Below are positions 26,758 through 63,418 of a stretch of DNA of 64,000 bases, piece by piece. Positions within the stretch are counted from its first letter, which is position 1. Each line of letters begins with the position of its first letter. Made by a program: the position numbers and the translations under genes. The notes below the pieces were generated by a model. It ran no database searches. It was given only the letters and a program-made list of their open reading frames with translations, and was not told the DNA's origin. The stretch lies in NCBI GenBank assembly GCA_030704615.1, contig CM060731.1:93558001-93622000 (forward strand). The letters are read 5' to 3'. Source of the stretch: Takakia lepidozioides (Eukaryota > Plantae > Bryophyta).

Positions 26758-29700
26758 ATGGCCACCAGTATACAAAGCCTCATACATCTTCTCACAGACT
26801 CCATCTCTCCGCACATTATTCTACTACAAGAAACTAAACTACACACCAACCGCCCTAACATCTCATACATAAACAAACTACTCCCGACATACTACTTCAT
26901 GTATGGCAACCCTTTGTCGGCTCCGCAATGCCTTAGGTGGCGCTCGGCCCCATATAGCCCCACCCGGGGAGGCGTGGCCATTGGCATCCTACATACCCAT
27001 CATTCTCCCAGCACCACCACCAAAGTGAACGTCCCCATCCCTCTTCGCTCCCATCTCCAAATTATCCAACTTTATATGCCTGCTCTTAACCCAATTACCA
27101 TTATTCACCTATACATGCCCTCCCACACTGATGACCTCCAACTAATCCCATATATTATGCTTGCGATCTCTAAAACGGTTACCCATCCTCATCAGCAGCA
27201 TCACCACTACATTCTAGCTAGTGACCTCAACAGAGATATTACCCTCCTTGGACACTCCTATAAAGGTTCCCACCAACCCCCATCCCCTCCCGATCACGAA
27301 TGGGCCAAGTTCATTCAACAACACCGATTTAGCTACATACCCGCTGATCACCACTACTCCAGGCAAGGTGGTCTCCACTATTCCTCCGTGAGCCTCTTTG
27401 ATGGTTTCTATCTCAAAACCAGCACTGAGATCCCATCCTATCTTTGCAGCCATATTCACATTGACAGCATTTGTAACTCCGATCATTACCCAGTATCGGT
27501 TTCTCCTCCCCCCTCCCTTATCCCTTTCCGCCCTCTTCCCTCTATCCTTATCCCTCCTCCCCAACCCAGGATTCTATCCCCACTACCTAAACATAACATC
27601 ACAGCCTTCCAAAATCACTCCCAACCTATTGTCTCTATCCTAACAAAAAAACTCTCCCATATCCTCTCAGATACGAACCTCTCACAAGATCCCGATAACA
27701 CCTGGCTCGAAGTAAAGACCACCTTCTCTTCCATCTTACTAGAAATGACCAATAGTGTTCTCGCCACATGTGCTGCTCCCCCAGACCTGCCTCAAACCAC
27801 ATGCTCTAAACAAAACGGTGGATATCTTACCCGATCACAAAAGCGGGCATGGACCTCCCACCTAAACACCTATCACACTATCCGCAAAGCTCTCACCGTT
27901 ATACCTAACTCTTCCACCCTCCCACTACACAGAGATTGGCGCTCTGATCCCCACATCTCTTGCTTAAACTCCATATCTGTCTGTAGCCATATCTTGCCCC
28001 CTCCCAACCCCCTCCGATCTTCCTAGTTGGATTGCTGCTCTCTCCAAGCTGGGGAGGGATGCAAAAAAAACCCGCCTATAACATTACTAAACAAAAAGCC
28101 ACAGCTGATCACAAAAGATTTGTCTCATCCTGCCCACCCCCAAAAGGGGGCAGTAGCCGCAAGGCGAAGTGGCTCTTAGTTACGCCGGCCTCGGCCGGTG
28201 TCACCTCTCTCTCTCTCTTTTCTCATCCTTCAGCCAATTACTAGATGACCACCCTAAAAAAGCCCATAAAGCTATTTTCAACCCTGCTCTAAACCCACCC
28301 ATTGACTGCCTCAAACACAGATCCAACCATCTACTAACCACCCCTGATGACATAAAAAATGAAATGTGGATTCAAGCCTCAGCCTCCTACACTCCCACCA
28401 CTACAAAATGTCTGCATCCTACCCTACCCACTCCCGACTGCGTGTGTAAAGTCCGCCATTATCCTTGGCACAACTTAGACGGCTTCTCACTAGAGAACCA
28501 TGGTTCTCCATCAGACCTCATCCATGACGTCTTCACTCTTGATATCTTTGAATCCTGCCTCAAAGCCCTTCCCAAAGCCAAAGCCCCCGGCCCCGATTCG
28601 ATCCCAAATGCTATACTACAAGCTCTTGACCCTGTACTCCACCTACTCCTCTGTAAATTCTTTAAACTCTGCTATCAACTCCACCGTATCCCGCACATAT
28701 GGAAGCACAGCCGCACCATTCTTCTCCTCAAGAAAGGCGACCCTACGGATCTCAGTAATTACAGACCCATTGCCCTCGCTAATACTATCTATAAACTATT
28801 TATCAGTACCCTTACCAAGATGTTGTCCAACTATGGAGAACACCACCGCATTCTTAGCGATCCGCAAGAAAGCTTCCACGCCACACGTAGCACTACCAGA
28901 CAAATACAATATGTGATATGCGCCCTAGAAGACGCCAAACTTTAAAAACAAGATATATATCTCCTATATATCGACTTCAAAAATGCTTTTGGCTCTTTAG
29001 ACCACCCGCGACTACTCGCCATTATGACAGATTTAGGCTACCCATCAGACGCTATACAACTCATTGGCAATATTTATACTAACAGCTCCACGGAATGTAC
29101 ATGCTCGTATTATGGTTCTACCCCTTCCATTCCGATCCTCCGCGGCACTATCCAAGGCGACACCCTCAGTCCTTACCTCTTTAGCATTTTCCTTGAACCC
29201 TTGCTCAGATGGATTGCTCGTGGCAAACTTGGATACCAATATAAAACCTCCTCGAATGAAAATTCTGCTGCTGCTTACGCGAACGACCTTGCTATCCTTG
29301 CACACAAAACCCCAACACCTCAACCGACAAGTTGACAAACTATCCCGCTTTAACCAATGGTCTAGTATGGAACTAAGTCTTTACAAATGTGCCGTTACCG
29401 CGGCCACCCACCATAGTAAGCTTACCAAATCTTCTATGGCATCACACTCCAAATTATACATCCAATACCAGAACAAACCATTTCCCTTCCTAGGCACTGA
29501 TGAACCCTACACATATTTAGGTATTCAACTTGTCCCCTCGCTCACATGGCACGTACAGAACAACACTACACTTGCCAAATTATCCACTAAAAGGATGGCT
29601 CTTCTCAAAGCCCCCATAGCCATCAGGCCTAAACTATCCCTCATACAATCAGTCCTAAAACCACAAGTCCAATACTCTTTCCATGCGGCTCTTTTCTCCC

Positions 29701-32080
29701 TCCCTAACATCATCCAAATTGATAGACAAATCATCCAACTCACTAAGTGCATTTGTGGTCTCCCAAATAGCACTCCCAATGCTCTCACTCAACTTCCCAT
29801 GGACAGCTATGGCATTGGTACCAGTCCCTTAATAATCCCATACTCACGCACCCTTGGCTCTCAACAACTAGAAGCCTTCAACGACCCCGGTCGTCTATGT
29901 CTCATCTACCGTGGGCTACTCAAGCACCTGGCATTCAAGTATAATGGACTCCACTCGCTACCCTTCTTACATTCACAGTCTTGTCTTCATTCTCCTACCG
30001 CCCGCTCCCTACTCATACTCCGCCAGCTGAAAACCAGTGTGCAACCGATCTCCCTGACTACCCCAAATCCATATCCCCCCTCGAATAGGCCTGACTTACT
30101 AGCCCTTTCCTCTCCCAATTCAAACGCAAATTCCCCCGCCAAAAACCACTTATCATCAAATATTTCAAAGGGCAACACATCACGACCCTCACCCGGCTCA
30201 CACCAGCCACAAACAACCGCCTCTTGAACCCTGGAGAATTCACTCTTAAACACCCCAGAGCCACTACCAGAACCTGTCGATTCCTCTGCCATCTCCGCAC
30301 CCTATTTTGCCACCCATCGGCCTCATGTACCCTTGATTGTGACCTACCCTGTCTTCTTTTCCCCCATAGTCCACAAGACCTACTACCAGCCTTTCAAGCC
30401 GCCCCCCCCCCCTCTATCCTACAAATGCTTAAATCCTCCCATACCGGTGATACTTGTACCACCGACACTCTCCATTGCGCCACAGGCCCCTACCCCCTCC
30501 CCTCCTCACCACATACCCCAACTCCTAGTCATGACCCTGCTAACCCCTCCCCCCCTCACTCACACACCCAAATCTCCCCCACCCTCTCCCCAACTTCTAA
30601 CATCACCAAGGACGACCTAATCACCCTATCTCCTCCACCTAATTCTCCCACTTCCAGTGCCACCCCTAACAACCCCACCACCTTCATCATTGAAGACATT
30701 CTCGGGGTCAGAACCCAAACATCAACTGACGAGTTTGGCGCTATATGCCTAGATACGTACTACCTCTGCAAATGGGCCGGTTATTCTTCAGAATCCAGAT
30801 GGCAACACTTGGCAAATTGAGGACGATCATTTTGGGTCACACGACGACTGTGACCCCATCCATAACCTCGCCCTCCTCACTGCGTTCCATAAGCAAACCA
30901 ACACTAACTACCTGACACATACTCACCAACAACATATCTCCCAGTCACAACTCACGGATGCCCGCCACATTCCTTACCCGCTCTCCTTACCTCATATTCA
31001 CATCAATACTACCAAATGCAACCCTAATAAAGACATTGCTCACGACTCTCCCCTAATCTATCAAGGCCCACAGAAGTCTAAAATCTATGCCCACAATGGC
31101 CGATACATTGGTCTAATCCCCAATGATAGGCTAGTGTGGCTCTGACATAGATACTTCCCTCCTAACCCACAGGCTTGTCAGTTACTGCCACCCAGGCAGG
31201 ATTTCGCTATAGAAATTTGATGGCTAGTAGACCGTTACCTCAAGGGCACACCCCCAAAAAAACCCCACGTCCAATCCAAACTAATTCAAGCATACACTCA
31301 CAGTACTATCCCCAAGGAGTTGTCTAGTCTTCTTATATCCCCTTCCAACTTACTCACTCCTACTATTCCAGCCCACTTACGTGCCCCATGAAACTTACCT
31401 CATACGCTAGCCCACACCAGAGAGACTGCATCTTTGGCGCCATTGGACTAGCTACCCAGCATAGGTGGTCTGGCCACGGCTTTGCTCATCCTCGCTGACT
31501 CCCACATTCAAGAAGCCCTCCAATGGGCTTGTACTGCTACCCACTCCTCCCCCTCTGCCTGTACTATTCTCCTACTCACACAACAAAGGCCTCCTGACAA
31601 CCCCCACCCCCTCCTACAAACTCCCTCCTGGCGTCTCCCTTCTAGCCACCTTTGAACCTAACCAGCTACTATACGCGCACAACCTCCCCTCCCCTAAATA
31701 CATTCGACGCTTAGAACCCACCATTACATCATTATTGCTTGTCCAACACATCTATCCTACCCCCCTGCCCGTTAACCTCCCCTTCACCTTACACCACTTA
31801 CTTGAACGCACATGGGGGATGAAATTTTCCATTACCCCCACCACACACCCTCAACTACATCTAGCTCCTTACCCACCCTATTTCCCAGAGTCAACCCAAG
31901 CAAGGCCTGGATAAGGGCGCTACCACGCCCTTCTCCTGCCCCCCTCTCACCCCCTACTAACCCCCCGGTTTCACATCTACATATGCCGCTCAAATTCTCT
32001 CCCTCCCACTCCCACTATACAGATGGTTCCCAATCCGGCTCTAACGCTGGCTATGGTGTTTTTCACACTGCCAATAACCG
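26758..32080 (+). mobile_element. Non-LTR retrotransposon (Dualen/RandI-like architecture): APE - RT - chromodomain - PCIF1-like segment - RNase H start; degenerate, 3' part interrupted
   Basis: APE: IILLQETK, GGVAI, LYMPS, ASDLN, SDHYPV. RT: KAPGPDSIP, KKGDPTDLSNYRPIAL, IDFKNAF, RGTIQGDTLSPYLF, AYANDL. Chromodomain 30683-30820. YYSSPLTC...DCIFGA...WSGHGFAHP at 31361-31492. RNase H HYTDGS...GYGVF at 32013-32065. Confidence 0.9.
28132..28220 (+). mobile_element. 89-bp structured retroposon with (CT)n tail inserted in the LINE
   Basis: 9-bp TSD TCTCATCCT (28123-28131 and 28221-28229); removing it restores the LINE frame KRFVSSFSQLLDDHPKKAHKAIF. Confidence 0.85.
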
Positions 32081-33350
32081 AGGAGTTGTAGATACAACTG
32101 TTTTTTGTTTCGCAAAGAGAGAGCAGACATGTATTGCCAACAATACACAGGCAAATGAAGGAGTAGACAGAAGCTGTAATTCTTGTGGGCAGCCCCAAAA
32201 AGCTTTGTTGCTTGCCAAAAGCACTGTAGTATATGACAGATTGGCAGTAAGTTGAGAAGTGGAGCTCATGCTGGTACAACTTCATCCACGACAGCACCCT
32301 CTTACATGGTGAAGCCTCTGCCTTTTCAAGCTCGCCATGGATATCGATAATCGCCATGCTTGTCACCTGCAATGCACCTGTGCTCTGGCTAATTGTTGAA
32401 CTCAATCATTTTTGTGCCCCTTAGGGGTCTATGTATTTTTGGGGAATTTGCAATTGGGGTATGGAGGTGTTGTAGCACATTACTATGGCAAAGAGCCTAT
32501 TCTTCTGCAGCAGCTGGACCAGCCTGGACAATGCGCTCGAGTCATGGCCACATATCGTCATTCCCATCCACATCTGCACGTTCGTACAATGCATTGTTGT
32601 GTAGGTGATCAATACATTTTTATGAATGTTGCCATGCATTAAGAGACTTTGTCCACTTCGCATGTACATTATACCAGAACGCCAAAATGCGAGTTTGTCC
32701 ACATCGCATACATTTCAGCTGTGGATGTTGCATGAGCGGTGAGCATGAGCATGAGCAAATATTAGCATGAGCAGAGCACATTTCAGGGAATATTCGTCGA
32801 TTTTGGGCCTTAACAAACTACAATTCGACCGCTTTTCATGTCAAAAACTGCTCGGTGCATCAACATCATGTGGCGTAAACGTTAGGTTCGGAAGCGATAA
32901 AGTAGGTTCGGCAATTACTGAACCTATATAGTCGTTGACGATTACAGCAGAACATGTTCTCTTGGACAGGTGGTCGGTGCCGATTATAGGATGCTCGAGA
33001 GATTTGACAGGAATACCACTGCGGAAAAAGGCCCACGGGAATAGGGCCGTGGGAATAGGCACTCGTAGCAATAAATAAATAAAAATTGAACAAGCAAAAT
33101 ACCCGAGAGGAAAGCGATGCCTCGGAGATTTCCTCCACGTGTGGTTTTACGAGTGGCGCCCATTACCCAGTTGGTGGTTAAGGTGAAGTCGGCAACGACT
33201 ACACCATTGCTTCGAATTGGAAACAGTGCTCACCTTCCCACTATGGACAGTGATGCAGGTGAAAGCAATGATCCCGCGCAGGAATCGGACCACGAGAGGC
33301 CTCCGTCCCCTTAGCTGCGGCGAGTTCAAAATAGTGGTGTGGCTCCAAAG

Positions 33351-33833
33351 ATGAACAATGCTGCAGGCGAAAGTAGCAGCGCACTGTTGGAATCTCACGA
33401 GGACAGGCCTCAGTCCCCTGAGGTGGTATTTTTTCCGCCTTTCACCGAAGCGTTCGGCGAGAGCCTTGCCTTTTCGGAATTTGTACTGCCTTGGTGGAGT
33501 CTTATGGATTCCGACTCGTCGGAAGACTCATCCGAGGACGAAGACCAAGGTGGAGAGTTCCCTACAAATGCCTTTGACGAATTGGACGTGGACGGAGAGG
33601 ACGACTTGCAATGGATTGTTGCTTCCATGGAGGTCTTTCAGAGAGAGGCTCCGGAGTTTGTTGTGACGGCGGAAGCACACCCATTAGACTCATGCAGTAT
33701 CTGCCTGCAGTCTGTCCAAACGGGAGAGTGTATGTGCACGGTCACAGTGTGCGCACACTCCTTCCACACTGCATGCATTGAGACTTGGGTTCAGCAGAAT
33801 GGGACATGCCCGCTTTGCCGCCGTAGGTTGTGA
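33351..33833 (+). CDS. Intronless RING-H2 (C3H2C3) protein, putative E3 ligase
   Basis: CSICLQ...CAHSFHTACIETWVQQNGTCPLCR preceded by an acidic region; ORF intact. Confidence 0.8.
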   Translation: MNNAAGESSSALLESHEDRPQSPEVVFFPPFTEAFGESLAFSEFVLPWWSLMDSDSSEDSSEDEDQGGEFPTNAFDELDVDGEDDLQWIVASMEVFQREAPEFVVTAEAHPLDSCSICLQSVQTGECMCTVTVCAHSFHTACIETWVQQNGTCPLCRRRL

Positions 33834-35505
33834 GAGATAACTTGGGCATTTTGATTTCCAACTCTGTTTTCCGCCTACCTCTTTAGGCCCTCAGTGTACT
33901 GTGAACCATTTCCATTATAAAGTTTGTTATAACTTTTTTTGTCTCGGGATCTCTTCCCTCCCTGTGAAGCACCATTTGATTTCACTTCCGCCGTTTTATC
34001 TATTTTCTTCTCTAAAGCTCTTTCAGCTTTCCATCGCGTTCTATGGTAACAAAGGATCACGACAAGTAGCGGCATTGGCAGATACTCAAATCTGTCATCT
34101 TTCACGAAGACTTCAACGAACTACCGCATATGCACAATGTAAAGGCCTAACAGTACGAAGTCCGCAGCGAATTGAGCTACTCCATTTCAAAGTATACATA
34201 TTTTTCGAGAAAATGGCCAATGCCAAGGAAGAACATAAGGAAGCGTTTGAAGTTATGATATTTGTTATACCTTGAAGTCGGTGCCGACTTGAGGTAAATT
34301 CTTGCTCATGTATACAGTATACGTCAAACAGTGCATAGTCGGCACCGACTTCAACCTTTTCAAGTGAGGTCAACTTTTGAGCATGTATACAGTATACGTC
34401 AACCACTGCATAGTCGGCACCGACTTCAACCATGGAAGAAACATGCGCAAAGAGACATATGGTCCATGTTTACCCGAAGCATACGCAAGTGTTTAAGAGA
34501 GGTAAGCTATGCTCATGCGAGCTGCAGCTGAGGCCTAAAAATAACGTCGCATAACAAAGGGAAATGGCATTACAAGCATTAAACAAAAAAACTATGGCAA
34601 CCATTTTGAGCTCATACGGGCTTTATGGTTTACTGAAGAGATGTAGTGCACAAATACAAATTATAGATTGGACCTTGTTGTAGTCGGCACCGACTTTACT
34701 CGCAGTTTGCCAAGAGGAACTATATTCCCCAAAATAGGAACAATGTCTGTTAATTAGAGGATGTGTTTCAAACATATACGGTGTGCACATGCGAGCTGCT
34801 GCTGAGCCCTAACAATATAGTGGAGGAACAAAGGGAAATCGGTTCAGATGCACCAAACAGCAATCGTAGGACACGTAGTGCACGAAGCGAATACGACATA
34901 TTGGGTGAAGTAAAGAAACGACCTCGAAATTTACAAAATGGAGGTCGGCCTGCACTGTATAGTTGACACCGACTTAAACCACCTGATGTGGACGAAAAAA
35001 CATATTTCGAGGTAATAATAAGCATGTCAATAAAAAACAAATAGTTGTTCAAATGAGAGAAACTCCGCTCATGTGAGCGGCTAGTGAGCACTTCTTTAAT
35101 GGTTAAGGGAAAGGCAAAGGGGTTATATTTACATCGTACGTGAGGTGTTCAGTTCATGCGCTACGAAGGTATTGTGCAGATTTCCAACCCATACCAAAAA
35201 CTCTGCATATTGGGGAACGACCTCAGCGGTTGCACTTATATGAACTTGTTCATAGTCGCCCAAAAAAAAGATTGTGATGACAATCATTCACGTTGTATGG
35301 CACAACCATCTGGTGTGGTCATGTGAGGTACTCATAAGCGGAACAAGTAGACTTTTGGACATGGTGATGTATTACAAAAGCAATTCAAAGACATGTACAT
35401 GGTCGCTAAATACCACCATGTTGAAGGGTCAAAACAGCTGAGGTCATGCCCAATATCCCGGAGTCCTCAAACAGTACTGATTTCCAGACTTCTTTATCAG
35501 TAAAG

Positions 35506-38500
35506 CTACTCTTCCATCGGAAGCCCGACGTCATCGGCATACTCCATAGCTATATGATCTAATACATACCCCTGGTAGAATTGTCCCCACAGATAGACCC
35601 TGGGCTTCCATAAGACGATTGTCTGGGGTTGGAGCCCTCTCCTCAGAGCTCTCCTCCTCACCACTGCCATCGGAGGATTCTTCCTCACTGGTTGGATCCT
35701 CGCTTCCAGAACCCTCCTCTGCCTCACCATCCACATAGGGCTGGACCCGAACGCGTTGCACAACGGCCCTCTTCTGCGCTGGCCATTCTGCCATTTGAGA
35801 CACTCCTGTCCATGGCTCCTCTGCCTGAGCATTTGCTACTACCGCCGCATAGGGAGGAAGAGCGTAGCTCTTTTCCGGAGTATGTATCTCCGCAAGTCGA
35901 TCCTAGAGCCTAAGGCCTTCCCCACTCCCAGTATCCGCTGAACTTCGTTGAATCCCGGTGATGCCCCCACACTGTCGCTTTGCAACATGCGTCTGCGGTT
36001 GATCGCTACAAAGAGCACAAAAAAAATTAGTTAATACTAGCCAAAATGCCCAAAACGAACAGAAGTCAGCGTACTCATGTTCACTTACACAATGCATGTA
36101 CCTGGAAATTGGGCTTACTCACTCCAAGGATTGGATCTGAATTTGCGAGCCCTCGCGGTCATCGTTCATCCAATCGTTATCGCCATGAGTGGCTGTTGCC
36201 ATTTCCACCGTTGGTGGTTCCCGCTGCAACCCACAAAGCCTCTCTCGAAGGAGCTCCTCATTCCCCTCCATCGCAAGCAAATGCCTTTCGCAAACACTAG
36301 CAGCGACCATGGATGCCCCGCATCCCGATGTCAAATCCACCACTGCTCCTCCTTCCGGTGAACACAGCTCCATGAATGTCTGCATAAATCGCGGGCTTTT
36401 CTCCCGTGCCCCCCGTAGGAAGGACCCATCCTGGCGTTTGTGCAGCATGTCCGCTCTCACCATGTTCCGAACCAGGTCTTCATTGATGACATTGTGGTCG
36501 GTATCGAGCTTTCTAGTAACTCCCGGAAGTTGAAATTGCCCTCCAAGCTTTTAAGAAGGCAGAAGGCGTAGAATATGACAGTCTGCATGATTCAATGTTA
36601 GATACAATGCCAAAATTTTGTATAGTCTTGACCTTCGCCTTTCATAGTCGGTACAGACTATGCCTCCAATCAGCAGGTAGTGCATACAAATAAAGTCGAT
36701 AAGTATCATAGTCGTTACCGACTACGATAATGCGACAAATTTAACCATGTTGTTGTACCCTAAAACCCGTGTCAGACTGCACCCACTATGCCTTTCCCGC
36801 ATCTTCCAATAAGACGGTACCGACTTTGACTCCGTACAAGAGTTCACCCTCTGACATAGTCGTGGACTGACCATCTGCCAATCTCTCCAACCCCAGTCTC
36901 ATAGTCGGCACCGACTGTGTTTCCCACCTCTGCCACCCAACAACCGAAAGGCACCGGCAACCACCCCCATCCTTGTTGGTAATAGTCGGTACCGACCATG
37001 ACTCTAGCGTCTGATACAAGGTCGTCTTGCGTCCAAGACATACCGGGGACTACCTTACACTTGGCATATTGAACCTTTCAAACATTCCAAGCACAAACTT
37101 ACTGACAAACGTTACAAATGAACAGGGTAAACCCACCTGTGGTTGGCCAGCTTCTCCAGATTGCAGGGGAATTCGATTGAGGCAAGTCCACTTTTTCTTT
37201 ATAAGTTTGAATGGCCCCACAAGGCCAACGCATCTCCGGATTGATATCTGTCTTTGCATCCCCCTTGCAAAAAATCACAAGGCGCTCTTGTTGTTCCAAC
37301 TTGCAACAACATTGTCTCGGCCAGTGCCTTTCACGACTTGCCCATCGGGGAGGTCAACCGGAACTAAGTCCACCCCTGCTTTCATTCCCCTAGGCAAATG
37401 GTGTACAGGGTCAGTGGGTACGTGCCTCTCCAAAATGCGTCAATGTCGCCCATGGGCTCCGGCCACCTTCTGGACAAGCCAACCTACGAATGACAAATTG
37501 GAACCAATCGCACTTGAGGCATGTTACCTGCAACTCCCTCTCGCAAAGCTATCGCTTCGTACAGCAGCACAGATGCAAGCTGCAACATCCTCCCCTACAT
37601 TGTCTCCTGCCCCGAATGTCAAGGTCCGAGCAGACCTGTTCCTCCGCTCCACCTGAAAATTATGCAAGGCTTGGGTAAAATTTCCGTAGGCTGTGTTGTC
37701 ATGCCTATTTGCACTTTCTATCTCATCCACACCCTCCACACCGGTGTTGCCTCCACCCCTTCTGCCTGGGGGGGTTTCTTCCACTGTGGCGGCATTTTTT
37801 TTAGGTTTCTGTTTCCTTTTCCGCTGTTTTTTCGTTGCCAGTGCAGCCTGTAGAGTAGTGTTGGCTTGTTCAATTTGGGCTGCAGCTACTTCGGCGGCCT
37901 CCTCGGCACCTTCTTCCGTCAAGGGCTCCATGTTTGTTGGTGCCTCTAGTTCGTGATTCGTGTACTTCTTGTACACTTCAGCCTCCTCGTCAGGAATAAG
38001 ATTCGGTGGCAAGTCAAGCCACCAAAAGCACGGTAGATGTGAGGCTTTCACGTATAGGCCCAACTGCCTTCCGTTGTACATTGTGCAGTCACCCCGCTGA
38101 CTAGCCCACTGTGTGACCATGGCCGGCATACACTTTATGTGCTTGTTGGCGAGCAAGTAGAAGTTGAGGTACCTACAAAATTGTACGAGACATGTGTTAA
38201 TGTAGCAAACATATGCACTCCACCATGACCTCAACTTTTGCAAAAACCAAACTTGATGGAACTGTCATGAATCTTCTAAACTGTATACAATTCAACGGGC
38301 CAGTAAAGTCCCCCCTGGTTGCTCGGTAATCTGCCAGCTACGACCAGACCCATCATTCATCTCGCTCCAGAATAATTCCCTCCAGTACTTTATCCGGAAC
38401 TCGTCCACCCACTCTGACAGAGACCGTAGGGATGGTGCCTCCTCCCGGGTTGGAACCCCTTTTGAACGAGCCACTCCAACTGTCGCTCAGCTTCCTCCTT

Positions 38501-40665
38501 TTGCTGCAAGCCGAGCCACAAAATAAGAATGTTTCTCACAAACAATGTCATATACCAAAGCACTTTAAGTAATAAACGGTGTTTACCTGAAACCACCATG
38601 TCATCTTGTCCAACCACAAGCCGAACACCACATCTATTGGAGCCTGGGAAATTTAACATCTTTCCTAGTCCCAAGGTCGGAATTCCAAATCTTCAACCAC
38701 GCCACCTTCTCCGCAGTTGTAACCTCACTTGTTGCCAACATCTGCAACTTCTCTAATGTCATTTCGGGCTTTTGGTTGACGGCCAATTTCTTATAGTGCG
38801 CGGTTATCTCCAGCAGAAACTCATCACCCAAAGCTGGGTCACAGATAGATGAGTACTTGGCTATTTTGGTGTACCACTTCGTCCTGTGCACTTGAAAATC
38901 ACTCAATGGCCTTCCTAATGAATTCTGTTTTTTCGGCCATGGCGGGCAAGTGCACATGGGCTTCCAAGCACGCATTTCTGATTCTGCGGAATCCCTCTTG
39001 ACCCATGTACTCTATGAGAGCATCTCGCAGTATCGTCATCTAGTTCCCATCCCGCTTGTTCAAGCACTTCTCATAAACGTCTGGTGGAAGTGTTGATTCG
39101 TACTGCTCAACTGATGTGGTTACGCATTTTTGGAACTAGAATAGCTTGTGAGGAAGCTCTGATGACACGTTTCCACGATCTGTTACGCTGCACAACGCAC
39201 ACCAAAACGCAACTTAGTCGGCAACGACTATGACAGGAAAACACCTAATTCTAGATAGTCGGCTCCGACCACAACCATGCATCCCAACAGAAAATTGGCT
39301 ATAGCACCTACATCCCTCCAAACTGGTATAGTCGGGAATGACTATACCAGTTGAAGTGAACATGGCCTTCATAAATTGAACAAAATAGTTCCGGCGGGTA
39401 AAATTGCAATAGAGGGAACTCCAAATCCTCTGCAGTGAGTCATAGTCGGTCCCGACTATACGAGATCCTCGTTCAGGGGCAATGTGTTGTCCTGAAATTG
39501 AAAAACTTGTAGGTGAGGAAGGGGGTCTGGCTTTGAGACATGACGAAGAGGTCACTAACATATGCGAGGCCCCGAAATTGTAGTACTGCAAAAATAGTCA
39601 CTTTCTCACTCATGCGATGTAGAAGTTCCCTCCCGTCGGCAGGGAAGCTGTTATAGTCGGGAAGGGTGAAGCATACGTATGCAGATGTAACGTACACGGT
39701 CACCGATGCTCACCAGGAAAAGACAACCTAGCACATGTGAGCACAAATGCACATAAATACTTACACATTCATTCTGTTCATTGCACGTCATATGAGGCCG
39801 AGATCGGAACTCCTCACATCCAATATTTTGGCGTTCACACGGTAGTGCCAGCTTGCATCGTCAGCGTGCTGCTCAGAAATGACCTCCATCCATGCGTACC
39901 ACCTGTGATTGCCGTCGTAAATGTGTGCCATTTGTTCGAAAGGAACTCCCACTCTGTGTTCCTTATGTCCTCCTCAAATGCTGCATCCGCTGCTTGCCAC
40001 TGTGAAGACCAATTTTCTCGGTCTGCGGGTTCTATGTCCTGATATTGCCCACTGTCGTCATTTATGGAAAGCAGCATTGAAGCCAGGGCGTCGTTGTGCC
40101 TATCTGCCTCAAAGAATAGCTTGAGCTTGTTGATGCTGGGTCGCTCTGCCATTCGCACTGCCGGGAGGGGCTTCATCCTGCACAATGGGATTCGTGGAGG
40201 AGCCCCATTCTTGAGCAAATGCGCAATCGAGCTCATAATGTGGTTCATCGCACTTGTCGTCAATGACAAAAGAGCTTGTTTGCGTATGTTTGCAGTGAAG
40301 ACAACGTCTGCCACTACATTCTCATTGGTGGGATTCGACTTACCACCTGCCTGGGCGCTTGTGGTTGGACCTGGCAAGGCCCCGGTTGCTGAAATGGGGG
40401 AAATAGGAACGCGTGGCGTTGCACCTGCCGAGGCGCCGCTTGCAGATATGGGGGATACAGGCAAGGGATCCCTGGACGTCGTGGCGGCTGTGGACACCAT
40501 CCCTGCCTCCTGTGATGCCACGGTTTTTTTTCGAAGTTTCCCAGCCTTCTTTGGAGGTCTGCTCTCCGTGCTCTGTTGCGAGACAACGGTGCGAGTGCGC
40601 AACACCTTGCTGCGAGTTGCCGTTCCCAGCACGAAGTCATCCTCCTCATCCTGAACGTGCTCCAT
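35506..40665 (-). pseudogene. ParB/Srx-like domain plus beta-class amino-DNA-methyltransferase-like fusion gene, copy 2 (multi-exon, disrupted)
   Basis: N-terminal PPRIPLCRMKPLPAVR...IYDGNHRWYAW (about 39880-40200); GVDLVPVDLPDG...SWN (about 37290-37380); KKWTCLNRIPL; intron 36583-37136; REKSPRFMQTFMELCSPEGGAVVDLTSGCGASMVAASVCERHLLAMEGNE (36250-36410); acidic tail. Several stops and frameshifts. Confidence 0.75.
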
Positions 40666-41470
40666 GATAAGCAGGATACGCAGCTCGGTAGTGCAAAATG
40701 AAGGCGGAAGGTCGGGAACAATAGAAGGGGAGTGTGATCGCCGGACAATGTGGAGTAAACGAAAAGGGCAGAGCAATCCTCCGTGGCCCTCAACGGATGC
40801 CTTCAAAACAACACCCGTGCTTCAACGACACGTGCCCTCCCCCATGATGCTTTCGCTGCTCCGTGCCACGCCATCGTCATTCGCTTCAAGTTTAAATTTT
40901 GACTACGAATGGATGCTACCATCCCAAGAATTGTCATCCATTCCTCATCCCATATTATTTCTTATCCCTGCTTGCACGAGTGAAAAACATAATTTTAATA
41001 TTTATATTTTGTATGTATAGGCTATAATGGGCGCCCATAGTACTGAGCAATACCACCTTACCATTTGCAAAACATTGCCTTTCTTAAACGTCCATAAAGC
41101 AAACTCGCCCCATTGGAATGGTTCATTTATGTAGAAGGACATAATCGGCGCTGACTCTGGAGTACATGACACCCAAATCCGAAGGTGTGGGGCAGATGCT
41201 TGCCTTACCAAATGTCCACCAACTGGCTGAACACAAAATAGTGCAATAGTTTGTTGTACTGTAATAGCAAATCAAAAAGTGGTCGACGCGACACTACATA
41301 CAGTACTAACATTTATATACTTTACACACCCCCACTCCCAATCTGAAATGATATTACGAGTTATGAGGGCACAATGGGGTTTTTATTGATCCACATGAAT
41401 TCCATTTGAAGCACGTCTACTGTACTGACGGTGCATGCAAATGTAAATCCTTATGCCTTCTGAATACAAG

Positions 41471-41859: not shown

Positions 41860-43203
41860 CCCGGTTATCAACGTCACGTCCGTCAATCAGTGTCAGGTCA
41901 CGTCAGACCTGACGCTGACGGGACCTCTGTCACGTCAGGTTCGGGGAATATTCTGGTAAAAATAATACCAGATAAAATACTGCCACTTAAGCAGCCACGT
42001 CGCCGACACAGTGGCCGTGGCAAATACATTTTGAAAATTAACAAAATAAACACGACCGCCAATTCGTTTTATTTTTCGAAATTAAAAAAGAAATAGCGAC
42101 CGCCGTATTGGCGGTCGCTTCAATTTTTATTTTTTTTAAAGCAAGATTGGCGGTCGCCTTATTTTTTGAAATAGAAAAAGAAATAGCGACCGCCGTATTG
42201 GCGGTCGCTTCAAATGTTTTTTTTTTAAAGCAAGATTGGCGGTCGCACTGGCGGTCGCCTTATTTTTCGAATTCAAAAAACAAATAACGAGCGCTATGCT
42301 GGCGGCCGCTTCAATTTATTGTTTTAAAAAAACAAGATTGGCGGTCGTATTGGCGATCGCCTAATTTAAAAAAGAAAACAAGCGACTGCCGTATTGGCGG
42401 TCCCACGGTGGCAAATACATTTTTGAAAATTAACAAAATGAACGCGACCGCCAATTATGGCGGTCACTTTGTTTTTCGAAATTAAAAAATAAATAGCGAC
42501 TGCCGTATTGACGGTCGCTTCAATTTTATTTTATTTTAAAGCAAGATTGGCGGTCGCACTGGCGGTCGCCTTATTTTTTGAAATAGAAAAAGAAATAGCG
42601 ACTGCCATATTGGCGGTCGCTTCAAATGTTTTTTTTTTTTAAAGCAAGACTGGCAGTCGCACTAGCGGTCGCCTTATTTTTTGAATTTAAAAAATAAATA
42701 GCGACCGCTATGCTGGCGGTCGCTTCAATTTATTGTCTTAAAAAACAAGATTGGCGGTCGCCTAATTTAAAAAAGAAAACAAGCAACTGCCGTATTGGCA
42801 GTCGCACGGTGGCAAATACATTTTTGAAAATTAACAAAATGAACGCGATCGCCAATTATGGCGGTCGCTTTGTTTTTCGAAATTAAAAAAGAAATAGCGA
42901 CCGCCATATTGGCGGTTGCTTCAATTGTTTTTTTTTAAAGCAAGATTGGCGGTCGCACCGGCGGTCGTTTTATTTTTTGAATTAAAAAAAGAAATAGCGA
43001 CCGCTATCTTGGCGGTCGCTTAAATTTAAAAATATGCAAAATAGAAGTGACCGCAATATTGCACAAAATAAAAGGAAATAAAAGCGACCGCAGTAGTGGC
43101 GGTCGTTTGTTTTTAATAAAATATAAAAATACGGACCGTAGTATTAGCGGTCGTTTAATTTCAAAATTACAACAAATATGGTTGTACTGCTTTTTTTGGG
43201 TGG
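41860..43203 (+). repeat. Left long TIR with GCGACCGCC-N4-6-GGCGGTCGC palindrome array
   Basis: Direct reading; inverted match to 57588-58684. Confidence 0.85.
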
Positions 43204-43670
43204 GCACTATTGCTCTTCACTTCTTTTGGCGCAAACACTTGAGGTTGCTTTGGATGTTCTCTTCCATTGAACGAGAGTGTAGCCCAAGAGAAGGGTACGC
43301 ACATTTTGCCGTAATGGCTTCCACCAAAGCCACTTCAGCAGATTGTGTATAAGCTCAACACTACAACCCACATCGACCCACTTGGGTTGCTGACAGGTGT
43401 AGAAGTGTTGGGCTATCGCATTGCATTCTACATTCACAACACGTTCATTTATAGGTGACTGTTTTTTGTTGCTTGCATCGCTAGGTCCCAGGGGAATGGA
43501 TATTGGGTGAAGATGAGGGAGGAATGGAGCCCTTGGTATACGGCAATACTGCTCCAATCAATAGAGAACTCGCACCATCAGTTGTGCTCCAACAGCAGTA
43601 TCGGTCCCCGAGTAAATAAACTTCCGTTGTAAATAGATACTTACGATAAGAAAGCTTTAATCCACATAGG

Positions 43671-46594
43671 TTGCACTCAACACTACCAATGGCACTGACA
43701 GTGTTCGAGCTCGCTCACCTCGGCTATAAAGGTGTGAAGTGCGTTGGGGTGGGTTTATGCCCCAAAGCATCTATTCGGGTAAAAAGCCACTTTGCCCAGT
43801 GTGGAGGCAATATTCCAATGTCTTTGGATCTGGACATGACCTCTGAGCAGAACACTCTATCTTCCCGTCAGGATGCCCCGATTAGTACCCAGGGCGACTC
43901 TTGTGAGGCTTCGGGTGTCATTAGACAAGTGGGTTGTGCCGGAGCAACACCTGCTTCAACACCGCTTTGTACCCCTACACTTCAACGGAGTAGAGGATTA
44001 CGGCAGCAATCCATGCAAGAAGGTCTTAACTTGTCTGCGAAAAGACAGTGGGATAAAAAATGGGCGCAGTTTTTCTTCGAGGCCAACATACCATTTAATG
44101 TGGCAAAGTTTCCGGCATTTGTTTCTGCTGTTAGAGCAAGCTCGGAGTCCAGATCCACATACGTGCCTCCGACTTATCACAATCTCCGCACAAGATTGCT
44201 AGAAGACGCCATGACCGAGCTTACCCAAAAGGTCAACGATAGGATGGACGAGTGTATCAGAAAATATGGAAGCACTATATGTGCCGATGGTTGGAGTTCT
44301 ATCACAAACAAACCGTTGTTCAATGTCATGCTCGTATGTCCAGTTGGAGAACAATTCTTGGGATCAGTCGACACTAGCGGCGAGAAAAAAGATGGACGTC
44401 ATCAATGCCAACTATTGACGGACTTCATCGAACAGGTCGGAAGTGATAGAATCGTGCAAATATGCACAGACAATGCCGCTAACATGATAAACACTTCAGA
44501 CATGTTGTTGGCACATAATCCCCATATGTACTATCAAGGTTATGCTGCTCATATCCTTGACCTCCTTTCGGAAGATTGGGGAAAAGAACAGTGGGTGAAA
44601 CAACTTGTCAAGCGAGCGAAGACTGTTGTGTCGTTCATCCGCACACACCACATCCCTTTGGCAATATATAGGAGGCACGAACCCAAATACAGCCTCCGCA
44701 ATCCAGGCGAAACTCGTTTTGCCACTAACTTCTTAATGGTGGATCGGTTGGTGACGGTGAAGAGCAGTCTGGAGTACACCATCATCGATCCTCAATGGGA
44801 TGCGTACACACATTGCGAAACTTCAGAAAAGCCAAGCCATTGGGCAAAAGTCAAAAAGTTCGAAATAACATTCGTAGCGATGATTTCTGGAAGAAATGTG
44901 AAAACTTTGTTTATATGGTTGAGCCGGTGTTAATCGTTTTGCGGGAGTTTGATGGAAAGCAGCCAGTAATGGGCAAGGCATGGTTACTAATGCAAAATCT
45001 TGAGAAGCACGTCCAATCCTCGAGGCATCCTCCCTTCTCCTTGGAACCTAAACTTGCGGACAGTGCTGAGGATGCATTTTACGACCGTCGTTCGATGGTT
45101 CGAACGGACTTGCATTATGCGGGGGCTTTTCTCATTCCATTCTTGCTCGACAATACCATGCTCCGAGACGACGCTGATGCCAAGGCCGGCCTCATGCGAG
45201 TGCTCATGCGACTGGCTCCGCCGAACTATGCAGAGAAAGCTATATCCGAGTGCCAATGCTTCTCAGATCGCCGTGACCATTTTGAGGACATGTCGGATCC
45301 AAAAGAGCTCAATACGCTGCCACATGAATGGTGGGATCTGATTGGAGCTGGAGCAAGAACATTGGCTTCCATTGCGAAGCGTATTCTTGCTCAAGTGTGC
45401 TCTGCCTCATCTTGCAAACGCAATTGGAGCAGTTACTCATTTGTTCACAACAAGATTCGCAACAGGTTGAATCCCGCAAGGGCTGACAAATTGGTGTATG
45501 TGTGTACCAATTGCCGACTGCTACGTGAGAGGGCAAGGGATGATGCTGCAGCATGGTATGAGAGAAATTTGCACTCCGAAGACTCTGCTTCTAAGGCTGA
45601 TTCAATGAGTGACGATACTGAGCCTCAGAGAGAATCATCTCAGAAGGAATCATCTGCCTCCGATAGTGAAGATGGATCCGATGATGCTCCCAAAAATGCG
45701 TATGACCCGTTTACATTCACAGAGCAGGATGCTTATATCCAGCCGACCTTTGATGACATTCTTGAAGAAGTGCGTATCGCAGATGAAGGTGAAGCTGCAA
45801 TTGTACTATCCCCAGAATATGGTATTCAAAATGAAGTTGGGGTCGACCCTCGCCCTCCACTACACGCTGAAGCCACCGATAGTGCCCCAATGGAGCTTAG
45901 GGGTGATGTACTGCCAGGACCGATCGACATACGCAACCCTGTTCATACAAACGATGGTGTCGAACCCATTGTACAGTCGACGGGACCGGATCATGCCTCA
46001 CCGATACGACCAGCTCCACCACAATGTCAAAACCGATCTAGCTCCTCATCAACACAGCGGACATTAAGGAGCAACAAGGTTGATCTGTTTTCCACACACA
46101 TGCATCATTCTGCTGCATTGGACCGGGCGGAAGTTGAAGCCTCGGATGATGACAACCTGCCACTACAATTCCACCTTAACCGACGTATTGTGCAGCAGAC
46201 CCGTGGTTCCTCACATGCCGGACCATCTAATGCCGGTCCATCTCGGACAGTCCCCCCTCCGGTACCTCCTTCGACACCACCTTCGATTGCGTCCCAAGTC
46301 CATAAACGACAGAGAACAGTCCAACTTTTTGTAGGTGATCGGCCCACAAACAGACCAGATACCGTGGATGGTATTCAAGATCAGAGCGGGAGTCGACCTC
46401 AAAGAGAACTAAATGTGGTTCGAGGTCGCTTACAGATTCAAAGGCCTGGACATATGAGGTCGGATAGGGAGGACGATTCCAGCACTGATCATGGCAACGG
46501 TGGTGAAATCGATGGTGACCCGGATTTTCAACCCATCGGAGCATTAAGATTAGGATCTTCTTCGTCCCGCCGTCGAAGCAGTAGAAGGAATTGA
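43671..46594 (+). pseudogene. hAT transposase (DUF659 plus hATC dimerisation domain), disabled
   Basis: TICADGWS, IVQICTDNAANM, AAHILDL, PGETRFATNF, WWDLIG, VCSASSCKRNWS, KIRNRL. Frameshift near 44800-44830; catalytic SCERNWS reads SCKRNWS. Confidence 0.93.
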
Positions 46595-46859
46595 AGCAAA
46601 ACAGCTGTAAGCATGCATCAGCACTTTTTAGTGTACATGTTTATATTTCTGTACTGAAGTAATACCAATGTGATCATTGTCACTATGAGTATTTGTATTG
46701 CTGTTGTGTATGTGTTGGAAAATAAAAGATGTTGCCCATGTGTATATCAGCCAAAATGTCGGCCAAAGACACCGTCACTTGCTCATGTTTGTGTTCGGTG
46801 ATTTGCTTGTGGAATGGAGAACAATTGTGCCATGCTTCTAACTGTGCATTCATTTTTAT

Positions 46860-48535
46860 TTAAATGGAGCGACCGCCAAGGTGGCGGTCGCTTCTACAAA
46901 GTGTGACCTGCGCATGGAGCGAGAAGTGAGGCGGGGGGAAGAGGGGCATATAAGCTCCGGGACATTCTCCCCTCACTTTGCTTAAAGTTTTTTTTTGCTT
47001 TTATAAATGCAGCGACCGCCATTACTAGCGGTCGTTTTTTTTCTTTTTTTTGGCGAAATGGAGCGACCGCCATTTGTGGCAATCGTTTTTTTCTGTTTTT
47101 AAATGGAACGACCGCCATGGTGGCGGTCGCTTCTACGAGGACTGCATTGCGCGTGGAGCGACTTTGGGGGGGGGGGCATATAAGCCCCTAGTCATTCTCC
47201 CCTCACTTCCATTACTGGCAGTTTTTGTTTTTACAAAATGCAGCGACCGCCATTTTTGGCGGTCGCTGTGATGGTTATTTTTTAAGATGCAGCGACCGCC
47301 ATTACTGGCGGTCGCTTTTATTTTAATTATTTTGGAAATGAAGCGACCACCTATGTTGGCGGTCGCTTATTTATTTTAAATGTTTTGAAAATGAAGCGAC
47401 CGCCTATGCTTGCGGTCACTTATATATTTTAAATGTTTTGAAAATGAAGCGACCGCCGATGATGGCGGTCGTTTATTTATTTTAAATGTTTTGAAAATGA
47501 AGCGACCGCCTATACTAGCGGTCGCTTATTTTTTATTATTATTTTTTAAATGAAGCGACCACCTATGTTGGCGGTCGCTTATATATTTTAAATGTTTTGA
47601 AAACGAAGCGACCGCCGATGCTAGCGGTCGCTTATTTTTTTATTTTATTTTTAAATGAAGCGACCGCCTATGTTGGCAGTCGCTTATTTTTTTTAATGTT
47701 TTTGAAAATGAAGTGACCACCTACGCTGGCGGTCGATTATTTATTTTAAATGTTTAGAAAATGAAGCGACCGCCTATGCTGGCGGTCGCTTATTTATTTT
47801 AAATGTTTCAAAATGAAGTGACCACCTATGCTGGCGGTCGCTTATTTTTTTTTATTTAAAAAAAAAATGAAGCGACCGCCTATGTTAGCGGTCGCTTTTT
47901 TATTTTAAAGTTTTTGAAAATGAAGCAACCGCCTATGTTGGCGGTCGCTTATTTATTTTAAATGTTTTGAAAATGAAGCAACCGCCTATGCTAGCGGTCG
48001 CTTTTATTTTAATTTTTTGAAAATGAAGCGACCGCCCATGTTGGCGATCGCTTATTTTTTTTAAAGTTTTTAAAAATGAAGCGACCGCTGATGTTGGCGG
48101 TCGCTTATATATTTTAAATTATTTGAAAATGAAGCGACCGCCTATACTGGCGGTCGTTTTTTTTTTAAATTTTTTTTTAAAGGATGCGACTGCCTATGTT
48201 GGCGGTCGCTTATTTATTCTAAATGTTTTGAAAATGAAGCGACCGCCTATGCTGGCAGTCGCCTATTTATTTTATTTTATTTTAAATAAAGCGACCACCT
48301 ATATTGGCGGTCGCTTTTTTATTTTATTTTATTTTCAATGAAGCGACCGCCTATGTTGGCGGTCGTTTTTTTTTTAAATTTCCGGAAAATGGAGCGACCG
48401 CGTGTTTTCTTTTTTTCTTCTTTTTTTCGCAGATTTTTTTTATTTATCCGGAAAATCAAGCGACCACCAGTTCTGGCGGTCGTTTATTTTTTTATTTTCC
48501 GAAAAATCGAGCGACCGCCAAGTTGGCGGTCACTT
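46860..48535. repeat. Internal tandem array (about 58-bp units) AAATGAAGCGACCGCCTATGYTGGCGGTCGCTTATT
   Basis: More than 20 palindromic units separated by AT-rich linkers. Confidence 0.9.
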
Positions 48536-48544
48536 TTAGAAGAT

Positions 48545-48622
48545 TCGCCCTGCACGTGGCCCGAGAAATGAGGGCGGCGGGGGATATAAGCCAAGGGAAG
48601 CTTATTCTCCCCTCACTTCCTC
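48545..48622 (+). promoter_or_regulatory. Putative core promoter module (G-box CACGTG, TATAAG, pyrimidine-rich initiator ATTCTCCCCTCACTT); related copies at 46900-46980 and 47140-47210
   Basis: Three near-identical modules; this one lies about 300 bp upstream of the 48904 ATG. Confidence 0.5.
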
Positions 48623-48903
48623 TCCACACAATTTCTGTGTGCGTAGCATTTCATTATTCCACGACACGTAGTCACGTGGAGAAGGAGGCCATTGGTTGGG
48701 TAGGGGGTATTTTTTGCCGCGATTTCTGTGAGGTCGTTGTAGAATGCTCCCATAGGCCCTCCTCTGGCTTCCAGGATCATTTTATTCTACAAAATTAGCT
48801 TTTATGAAGTATTGACACATAATCAAACCTACTTAACGGGGGAAGGGTTTAGAGTTACGTCTTTTTAGAAAACCTCGTTTAGTGTTGCTCCGATTGTTGC
48901 AGA

Positions 48904-51243
48904 ATGGCAGAGGGCCAGGACGATGACCGTCATGGAAGATATGACCCCAATGAACATGGACCACCCCTTAAGAAAATCAAAGGGTCAAGGCAAGACTTCA
49001 ATTGGGAAGTATTTGGTGACCCTAACATACTAGCAGAAGAGGGCTGGGAGGATGTTCCGGAAGAGTTCCGGTGGCCGATGGCGAGATGGTAAAAAATCGT
49101 GAAATGGTACCACATCAATCGATTGTGGCCTTTGGATAGGCATGACGTGCAAACCCGAAACAATTACGCAGAGTCCAGGTCTTGCACGAACTTGCATTTC
49201 CAGCATAGAGCGAATGAGGTGCATTGTACATTGTGGGGTCAACCTCTTTTAAAGGGTCAAATCTCGTACACCTTGGTAGCCATATTGTACGTGGAGGTCA
49301 TACTCTTGCGTCCAGTGAATTGACAAACTGCTAGTAGGAGGAACGCAAGGTTGCTATACGATTTGGAGTACATCCCGGACACGTTCGGAATACAACCGGC
49401 TGCAACATTAGAGGAACAACTGGTGGAAAGAGACCAGCGAATCAGGACCTTGTAGAACCGACTAGACTGACAAACACTGCGCATAGCCGAGTTGGAAGCT
49501 ACATTGCAAGACATGCCTCCAAACAATGAAGGCACTGTTGTCCACAATGAGGATCGAACAAATGTCGTGGACATGGATGCGGAGTTTGCGATGCCCGATC
49601 GCAGTATTGACCTCATCATTCAGGAAGTTACGGACGTCCTTGACCCTGTGGCCGATGAAACCATGGTTGAGGAACAACGAATTGCGGATGAGAGAAGGAG
49701 GAAAGGAAAAGAACAAGTACTGGAAACCGGGGAATGCTCGAGGGTCGCCATTCAATCGGAGATGAACCCGATATTAGATGTCGACCGCGTTACAAAGGAG
49801 CGGGACATTGCCATAGCAACTGCATGGCGCTTGTCCAAAACGCTGGAGATTCAGGCATGGGTCCCATTGAATGACGATTGGGAGAATTGGGTACAATGGG
49901 CGACCCATTTGGCCTCCAGAGAAGCACGGGTAGAGCGGGCACTGTCAGGCTTGCAACATGTCGCACGCATGTCGAACCGTAGCGTGGATAGCATTTATGC
50001 CAACATGCAAAGGTATAACGATCTCCGCATCGCATCAAGCGTGTTCGTCGGGTATACCAATTGGGCAGATATGGGTTCTATGTTCGATCGATGTGAGCAC
50101 ATAATTTTGAGGTCGAACAGAAGCATAAACTGGGAATTGGAGATAGAGGAAGAGTGAGACACCACAAGAAGGATGACCAGCCACATCAATAAGGCCCAGA
50201 GGGAGGAGATACCACGAGGCGTTTTGCCGTCATGGATATCAAATGGCACAGTTTGTTCGATGTGTAGGAATCCATACGGCCCAGAGGGATGTCATGTGCT
50301 TGGATCATGTGGACATATGTTTCATCTCACATGTCTTATCCCGCAAGCCTTGCGGACGAGCGCTTGCCCAGAATGCCGTACACCAATCCATCGCCGTTTC
50401 TATGAGCTGGTGGGCTTGGAGGATCGGATGCCCATAGGTTTTGAATACAATCGACACAACCTCCCATTGGATGGGCTACCATACACATTTCTGAATTGTG
50501 TGCATTGGGGCAAGAACTTGGTATGGGATACAGACAGAGAGATGCATGGCATACATGCCGGAAACCCGGCATACATCAAAGATCCCCAGTATTTCTGGGT
50601 CACATCTGATTGGGAGATAACCATACGTGCGGGAGGTATTCGAGATTGGTGGGAGAGAGAGCAGTTTTGCTGCAATCTGGGAGGGCATTGGAGTCAAAGA
50701 AGGTCCAGGTTTATCCGGCTCCCACAGGTTCCATGGGTGCCGGAGGAGAACGAATTGTATGACCGACAACCGATTGGGAGACATTTGTTGCTGTCCGAAC
50801 TGGAAGACGCTATAATATGTCAATGCCGAATGAATGATGCGTACAAGGCGGTTTATTGTCGAAACGACACAATGATTAGGGACAGGGCCCGCGAGAGGCA
50901 GTTGGAAAGTTTCAAAAGTACCATCAAAGCAGTTGTAGAGAAATGGAGGTGATTATGGACAGACTGTTATCGTCGTGTTTTGGGGGCTGTATTGCCGGAT
51001 GTGGACGGTCTTGTTGCCGATTTGCATGCAGCCCGAGCACTTGTTCTCGATCCACCTCCGCCACGTCGTGAGAATGAAGAAGAAAGTCAACTTTCGCCGC
51101 GAAGTAGGCGGATGCAGGCCAGAATTGATCACATGTCATTGGGCCCCTCATTGACCACGAGATCACGGTCGCAAGCTCTGGCAATCGGCAGTGCAAATCA
51201 GGCCACAGCATCAAATTCCACATCCTCGGACAGTGACGACTAG
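48904..51243 (+). pseudogene. Single about 780-codon frame with coiled-coil and RING-H2 domain, broken by six in-frame stops
   Basis: ORFs starting 48904, 49099, 49492, 50173 and 50980 are all in one frame; stops at 49090, 49321, 49453, 49468, 50155, 50950. RING: CSMC...CGHMFHLTCL...CPECR. Confidence 0.75.
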
Positions 51244-51689
51244 GCTTTGAATGACTGGCAGCATAGTACATATACAATATGCATTTTTGTTGTACCTTGA
51301 ATATTGTTGGAAAACATAGTGATGGCACTCCGCCAAGTTTGTATATCACCAATTTTGTTAATACACAATGCACATGTGCGGCACCTCCCAATTTCAATTG
51401 CATGAGCAACGTTTTCTTCACATTTACACTCGTGTGATGGGGAAGAAGTAGTTCACCTTGTAAACAAATTTACAATGGTATCATATTTGGTCATGACGTG
51501 TATATGGGTATTTGCAATGAACTCCGAAAGCTGGAGAACAAGGAAAATTGATGTTAACAAATAAGTTATAATGAGTTACGAACGGTCCTCTTCCAAACAA
51601 ATTTCGCCTGGTCCCTGCGTATTTCATAATCATTTCGCAAAATCTATGATCTTTCTACGAACATACCCACAAAGTTCTCAAAACACAAA

Positions 51690-54360: not shown

Positions 54361-54572
54361 TAACCCTATCCGAAACCTTGGAACATTACAAATATAAACA
54401 ATGAGCCAGTACACAAACCATTTATGTTGCGATGACAGGTGCCAGGGTCGAGCATATGCAATATAGTATGTACAATGGGACTTTATTTATTACATGCACG
54501 TCCAAAATTGAGTTATGTCTTCATAAAAGAACCATTGTACCGCCAGAAATGCCATATCTACGAGACTATGGT

Positions 54573-63402: not shown

Positions 63403-63418
63403 CCTCTGTACACTGTGC

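Follow-up and report, generated by a model that had tools for sequence, protein, structure and literature searches.

A 64,000-nucleotide stretch of the Takakia lepidozioides genome (contig CM060731.1 of assembly GCA_030704615.1, positions 93,558,001 to 93,622,000; hereafter the window) carries on its minus strand, at 40665-35531, a decayed gene of about seven exons and about 1,200 codons (three-frame translation), in which a predicted ParB/Srx domain, a helical middle and a beta-order N4/N6 methyltransferase follow one another. This gene is very probably a pseudogenised accessory gene from a large Mutator-like family of DNA transposons found in non-seed land plants, present here without its transposase, and it is a land-plant variant of transposon accessory genes already predicted in algae.

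Our survey of relatives revealed that the methyltransferase lies on the same strand downstream of the ParB part in all 14 distinct homologous loci that extend 3.5 kb or more downstream (setting aside one locus taken as 3.4 kb by the window of the script), and that a transposase-like gene stands head-to-head with it in nine of the 12 loci with at least 6 kb upstream, although the loci in these two counts are not phylogenetically independent. The arrangement of a ParB-like plus amino-methyltransferase gene on the strand opposite a transposase was present in those nine relatives and in four copies from the moss Ceratodon purpureus. The fusion is therefore old, and the two domains belong to one gene rather than to separate genes, as an earlier note on this DNA, made from the letters alone, had proposed.

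Structure and decay of the window gene

The single spliced minus-strand gene of the earlier note was borne out: all of its pieces are present and, when the spliced model was searched one exon at a time, the exons matched moss homologues in the same order all the way from ParB region to C-terminal tail, with several intron positions in common. The extent first given, 35506-40665, holds at the start, where the ATG at 40665 opens the frame containing IPLCRM at 40191, but not at the end, which lies near 35531, position 35506 being part of another frame. The seven-exon model (3,652 nt) has canonical GT/AG in 11 of 12 splice sites, the exception being the exon-3 donor, and its intron 4, of 44 nt, is uncertain. 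At 39925-39890, in a different frame from IPLCRM, is the GNHR motif (HIYDGNHRWYAW); the motif IV-like DLPDG is at about 37352, and the X-I-II motifs are REKSP, VVDLTSGCG and LLAMEG, at 36410-36260. The parts of the gene, in the direction of reading, are as follows.

40665-39765 (-): exon 1, an N-terminus of low complexity followed by the ParB/Srx-like domain (at about 40240-39770; fold via homologue model); frameshift at 39926, stop at 39790-39788
39764-39188 (-): intron 1, 577 nt, with four AGTCGG-NN-CCGACT-type palindromes (39216, 39257, 39330, 39444)
39187-38587 (-): exon 2, coding for the conserved helical middle; two stops (39138, 39042) and two frame changes (near 38902 and near 38646)
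38503-38281 (-): exon 3, with a gap of 10 nt near 38452 and one stop; TT as donor
38172-37528 (-): exon 4, conserved block, then a charged/basic linker that is possibly a nuclear localisation signal; extra base near 37597
37483-37137 (-): exon 5, catalytic half of the methyltransferase, bearing the motif IV-like DLPDG; frame changes, 5' boundary uncertain
37136-36583 (-): intron 5, 554 nt, with five palindromes (36646, 36710, 36812, 36903, 36984)
36582-36123 (-): exon 6, S-adenosylmethionine (SAM)-binding half with motifs X-I-II; frame change near 36517
36005-35531 (-): exon 7, acidic C-terminal tail and a short conserved block (LPPY); stop near 35905

The window copy is a pseudogene with at least 12 breaks, comprising stops at 39790, 39138, 39042, about 38294, the end of exon 4 and about 35905, and frame changes near 39926, 38902, 38646, 38452, 37597 and 36517, plus at least two in exon 5, where about 19 codons after motif IV are also missing relative to the homologues. 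A frameshift that hides the DGNHR part had been predicted; it was confirmed at 39926, but it is one of many breaks rather than the only one. Contigs of sister copies have one additional base at 39926 (in two DNA runs), showing that this frameshift is private to the window copy, and they differ from it likewise at 39136, 39041, 38901-3, 38646, 38452, 37597, 37242 and 36515-9. The introns of the window copy were matched without differences by contigs from a DNA run of the same organism at a depth of about 60. Since the organism's own reads match the introns exactly and sister copies differ at several of the breaks, assembly error was ruled out as the cause of those that could be checked, which are real and mostly private.

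Summed depth over the exon bins was mostly about 500-2300 against about 60 for the intron contigs, a figure that is not a copy count but points to many related copies. A repeated mobile family, in keeping with the mobile DNA suggested earlier, is supported. In run X2, a short segment 350 nt upstream of the ATG (41018-41083) reached a very high depth (about 6,000-7,500) and is high-copy sequence.

The ParB/Srx and methyltransferase domains

None of the pieces of the window gene matched Pfam, Protein Data Bank (PDB) sequences or phage proteins, and a word-index search with the ParB piece returned no match; the domain calls therefore rest on the homologues, whose profile and structure matches support both of the folds named in the earlier note. 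A profile built from the ParB exon recovered 267 proteins, and an AlphaFold2 (AF2) model of the region, made from 75 homologues, reached a predicted local distance difference test score (pLDDT) of 85. The best eight VIA matches of this model (among them PadC, KorB, SerK, Srx, pNOB8 ParB and SbnI) were all ParB/Srx structures, with Z of 5.2-7.3, while all others had Z of 4.0 or less; the top Foldseek rows were Noc, ParB, KorB and PadC, with phage ParB proteins also found. Identity to ParB/Srx structures is 10-14%, at which moderate scores are expected. Pfam ParB_N gave no match, nor did the alignment profile find anything meaningful among PDB sequences and Pfam. On the strength of the model, membership of the homologues in the ParB/Sulfiredoxin superfamily is supported. 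Motifs V-R-P, G-N-H-R-x-x-A-W and D-I-N are kept across the 75 homologues and, judged by known ParB motifs, may form a nucleotide site; within the GxxRxxA motif of alignment A2 (GNHRWYA in the window), G is present in 74, R in 68 and A in 64 of the 75 sequences. The helices that follow the ParB domain gave no clear helix-turn-helix match with VIA, and no ParA was seen. An ESM Atlas feature search linked the ParB exon of a Ceratodon locus (L001:8661-9176) to fungal DUF3723 clusters (score 0.93). As a lead, DUF3723, which we take to be a Starship cargo family, may be ParB-like.

A search with the methyltransferase exon returned 15 relatives, Ceratodon purpureus proteins among them. The Ceratodon region aligned with N6_N4_Mtase models at template modelling (TM) scores of 0.68-0.74 over about 210 residues (480-705), and weak sequence support came from Pfam (PF01555 with protein P0009, E 2e-4), DpnA, M.RsrI and phage methylases; DNA methylases were the best of 148 records in the phage search. 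A single-sequence AF2 model of the Ceratodon methyltransferase had a pLDDT of 31, and the fold therefore rests on the Atlas model and the profiles. The permuted order IV...X-I-II, which is the beta order, is present in the window gene and in the homologues. An amino-methyltransferase Rossmann fold of beta order and PF01555 type is accordingly what the models support.

The active site departs from that of canonical beta-class enzymes. Nearly every legible member reads D-x-P-[E/D/H] at motif IV (DLPD, DIPD, DAPE, DMPE, DYPE, DCPE, DHPH, DVPE) where beta-class methyltransferases have (D/N/S)-P-P-(Y/F/W), and by this motif the protein is not a canonical beta-class methylase; with the deviation spread over the whole family, methylation activity appears uncertain. 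The Asp preceding motif I is invariant and its last Gly and the motif II Glu are mostly kept, but the Phe and first Gly are not. Purifying selection on both domains is strong among Ceratodon copies: the ratio of nonsynonymous to synonymous divergence (dN/dS) is 0.06-0.09 in the ParB part, and of the methyltransferase exons the one with motif IV has 0.01-0.03 and the one that binds SAM 0.07-0.10. The low ratios show that the odd active site is being maintained and is not decaying.

Transposase linkage, palindromes and proposed role

The transposase linked to the relatives has a conserved acidic residue followed by CxxH (D...CxxH) and a SWIM-type finger (CxC...CxH). In four Ceratodon loci (L001, L003, L093, L094) it is unannotated where it adjoins the ParB-methyltransferase gene, and the NCBI gene models of that gene (758-810 amino acids) omit the upstream ParB exon, which has hidden the fusion. 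At L004:265-747 an open reading frame (ORF) for a TET-like 2-oxoglutarate (2OG)-Fe(II) oxygenase (PF20515, E 1e-28) lies in a ParB-methyltransferase locus beside the SWIM end of a Mutator-like transposase and recalls TET/JBP and the cargo PAG3 described below. A kinase related to the one in the window's hAT/kinase unit (see below) is flanked by transposase and ParB gene in L005; in L006-L008 such a kinase faces ParB head-to-head.

The unit that holds the window gene is dotted with palindromes. AGTCGG-NN-CCGACT, with at most one mismatch, occurs at 26 sites in the window against 0 expected by chance; about 18 sites of this type fall within 32929-41143, and all nine inside the gene are intronic. 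Beyond the gene the unit comprises the following.

32929-33200: palindromes upstream of the RING gene (32929, 32972, 33187), the leftmost marks of the unit
33243-33833 (+): RING-H2 gene, tail-to-tail with the ParB-methyltransferase gene; in-frame stop at 33312
34276-34975: five clustered palindromes (34276, 34337, 34412, 34682, 34961) separating the two genes at their 3' ends
41143-41156: degenerate palindrome upstream of the ATG, with two mismatches and weak; rightmost mark before the 16.8-kb element that begins at 41860

Because palindromes enclose it, the RING-H2 gene is probably cargo of the same element. The association of the two genes that had been suggested before rests on the palindromes shared here; none of the homologous loci retrieved has a RING gene. 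The core TCGG-NN-CCGA recurs with different outer arms in L004, L089, L090, L091, L092 and several loci from moss metagenomes, and in L089 and L090 the palindromes are distributed over the element, the transposase region included. The Ceratodon site is a 20-bp one, AG(C/T)CT(A/G)CG-N4-CG(C/T)AG(A/G)CT, present 9-17 times in the first intron and in the interval that separates transposase from ParB gene. Such arrays occur in four Ceratodon copies and were found in the best-preserved relatives, all site types containing CG; several decayed or short homologous loci showed no palindrome array. Among the same Ceratodon pairs the cassette has diverged far more at synonymous sites than the linked transposase (dS 0.5-1.1 versus 0.05-0.18), which, together with the variant palindromes, suggests that cassette and sites are exchanged between elements as a unit.

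We tentatively favour, at somewhat short of even confidence, a role in which the protein would recognise these palindromes, spread as ParB does and, with an active methyltransferase, modify and so protect the element against host silencing by 5-methylcytosine (5mC). An intact protein would find the element's own CG-containing palindromes of 16-20 bp, probably via the helical region after the ParB domain; after loading there it would spread over the element as a ParB clamp does on parS, with the help of a nucleotide, for instance cytidine triphosphate (CTP); the SAM-dependent methyltransferase domain would then write a mark foreign to the host, N4-methylcytosine (4mC) or N6-methyladenine (6mA), or otherwise modify bases; and the mark would keep 5mC silencing off the element in an anti-silencing role like that of VANC. 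The folds, their fusion, the linkage to transposase and palindromes, and the purifying selection speak for this, and the self-marking or protection raised in the earlier note may be regarded as a reasonable hypothesis. Its most far-reaching form appears doubtful to us: that Mutator-like elements of land plants carry a self-addressed epigenetic system, with a nucleotide-dependent ParB/parS-like clamp acting in the nucleus at element-specific palindromes, an amino-methyltransferase with a new catalytic motif (acidic for aromatic) writing 4mC, 6mA or another mark on the element's own CG sites against silencing, and cassette and sites swapped between elements.

Several observations weigh against the self-modifying transposon accessory gene. 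Motif IV reads D-x-P-[E/D/H] instead of DPPY, the base-stacking aromatic being missing in all legible homologues, and motif I deviates from FxGxG (DWSANTG in Ceratodon, for example). The structural scores for ParB are moderate (Z below 8, Foldseek E against PDB of at least 0.018), and the middle region is without an identified DNA-binding domain. The transposase of the relatives matched neither Pfam nor PDB, leaving the label 'Mutator-like' to rest on motifs; no transposase, terminal inverted repeat or target-site duplication was found for the window copy within the window; and no run on record as RNA contained the stretch.

The family-wide loss of the aromatic and the drift of motif I would fit a protein with the same targeting whose methyltransferase domain is dead or repurposed and serves to bind or flip CG/CHG bases, or to recognise methylated bases, shielding the element or recruiting chromatin factors with no mark written; the methyltransferase domains of DIRS1, thought inactive, are a precedent. 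We rate this as rather unlikely: motif IV retains its Asp and second Pro, with W-N still following downstream, motif I its Asp and motif II its Glu; no measured part is more constrained than the motif-IV exon; and DLP-type variants of motif IV are common in phage beta-class enzymes. It is less likely still that the protein aids transposition rather than altering chromatin state, with a ParB clamp compacting the element of 10-25 kb to join its ends, blocking self-insertion or retaining excised copies. The elements are large, palindromes run along them and into the transposase region (L089, L090), and clamping with spreading is a known ParB activity; however, the strong selection on the methyltransferase fold would be left unexplained, and the coupling of an algal ParB domain to another DNA-modifying domain (2OG oxygenase) points to modification. 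Domestication as a host gene, or recent horizontal transfer from a phage or bacterium into a single lineage, would account for two prokaryote-like folds but is very improbable and largely refuted by the high copy number, the decay of most copies, the link to a transposase, the introns shared with mosses and the searches for prokaryotic and viral relatives.

In those searches, viral contigs yielded no relative of the gene and no close prokaryotic relative was found. The sole GTDB match (L092, CADCWO010000058.1, a 4.7-kb contig in a cyanobacterial metagenome-assembled genome) is intron-split with plant-type palindromes and is probably plant contamination. The horizontal acquisition proposed earlier is therefore plausible as bacterial or phage ancestry of both folds, judging from their models, but any transfer would be ancient.

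The idea of self-modification, and the domain pair itself, are not new, contrary to the undescribed system that the earlier note had envisaged. The giant DNA transposon Sola1-1_Ec32 of Ectocarpus carries a gene of 1,104 amino acids, ParB-like plus N4/N6-methyltransferase, opposite its transposase, and its authors proposed that such proteins, also present in green and red algae, bind and modify their own element and may be a new class of self-modifying accessory proteins (PMC12477816, Genome Biol 2025). Compared by description, the two share a ParB-like domain and an N4/N6 methyltransferase in one protein encoded opposite the transposase; they differ in host and transposase (a brown alga and Sola-1 versus a land plant and Mutator-like), and neither a palindrome array nor the change in motif IV is described for the Ectocarpus gene. 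Homology searches with the methyltransferase exon and the ParB profile returned no algal protein, and a term search of the supplement did not find the Ectocarpus protein. The same self-modification idea was put forward for the red alga Bostrychia, where Plavaka elements with PAG2/PAG3 have a ParB-like domain beside inverted-repeat arrays and an N6_N4_Mtase domain in the same cassette, which moves between transposon families, including Mutator in Chondrus (10.1101/2025.02.11.637652); that cassette uses two genes, one joining ParB with a 2OG oxygenase and the other the methylase with a SET domain, whereas here ParB and methyltransferase form one gene.

Fusions of ParB_N and N6_N4_Mtase in phages and bacteria (ParB-terminase loci) have the same two folds in the same order, but they are intron-less, of about 400-500 amino acids, with a canonical DPPY-type motif and no long helical middle, and their identity to the plant gene is 10-15% for ParB and 24-30% in part of the methyltransferase. 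VANC of the Mutator-like VANDAL elements is likewise an accessory gene carried by a Mutator element, with element-specific non-coding motifs as its supposed targets; it is an unrelated protein of eudicots with a proven function, whereas the role of the plant ParB-methyltransferase would follow by analogy. To our knowledge, escape of DNA transposons from methylation silencing has been proven only for VANDAL/VANC. Marchantia DN4MT1 and bdelloid N4CMT are also eukaryotic amino-methyltransferases of prokaryotic origin, but they are host genes with no ParB described for either, and by motif IV (TSPPY in DN4MT1, D-x-P-[E/D/H] here) they are not of the same family.

Our literature searches, whose coverage lacks many journals, found no report of a land-plant version. 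An accessory protein combining ParB with DNA modification has been predicted in algae, and the land-plant version makes the question testable through the near-identical, apparently young Ceratodon purpureus copies, with their 20-bp candidate site and strongly conserved unusual active site. If active, such a protein would bring 4mC or 6mA into plant genomes and act as a ParB clamp on eukaryotic chromatin; the window copy itself is dead and adds comparative data only.

Surroundings in the window

The unit is bordered by a long interspersed nuclear element (LINE) cut near 32085 on one side and by a 16.8-kb hAT/kinase unit from 41860 on the other. The decayed LINE (26704-32085, +) ends at the start of an RNase H-like region. 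The second neighbour (41860-58684) has CCCGGTTATCA ends and kilobase arrays of GCGACCGCC repeats; no target-site duplication was seen, and it may be two nested elements. Its features are:

43671-46594: hAT transposase
50158-50949: RING-like ORF
53120-54360: hairpin cluster
54576-56051: kinase

The hAT transposase was considered as a partner of the ParB-methyltransferase gene and ruled out, since it sits in another unit, which has GCGACCGCC repeats of its own and no AGTCGG palindromes. The hAT and kinase pair is also adjacent in Ceratodon (L001:17521-23387, at 26-46% identity), which points to an old hAT family that carries a kinase.

A second spliced methyltransferase of the same family lies at 1085-2080 (+), with motif DIPDG and 42% identity over 64 residues; no ParB part was detected for it in the window, and it is followed at 3089-6783 by related arrays of AAGTCGGCACAGACTT-type palindromes. 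A zinc-knuckle ORF at 58684-60800 (-) resembles L1 ORF1, and at 61830-64000 another element begins, with a different palindrome (GCACGGGAGATCTCCCGTGC) and an ORF at 63422-64000 (-).

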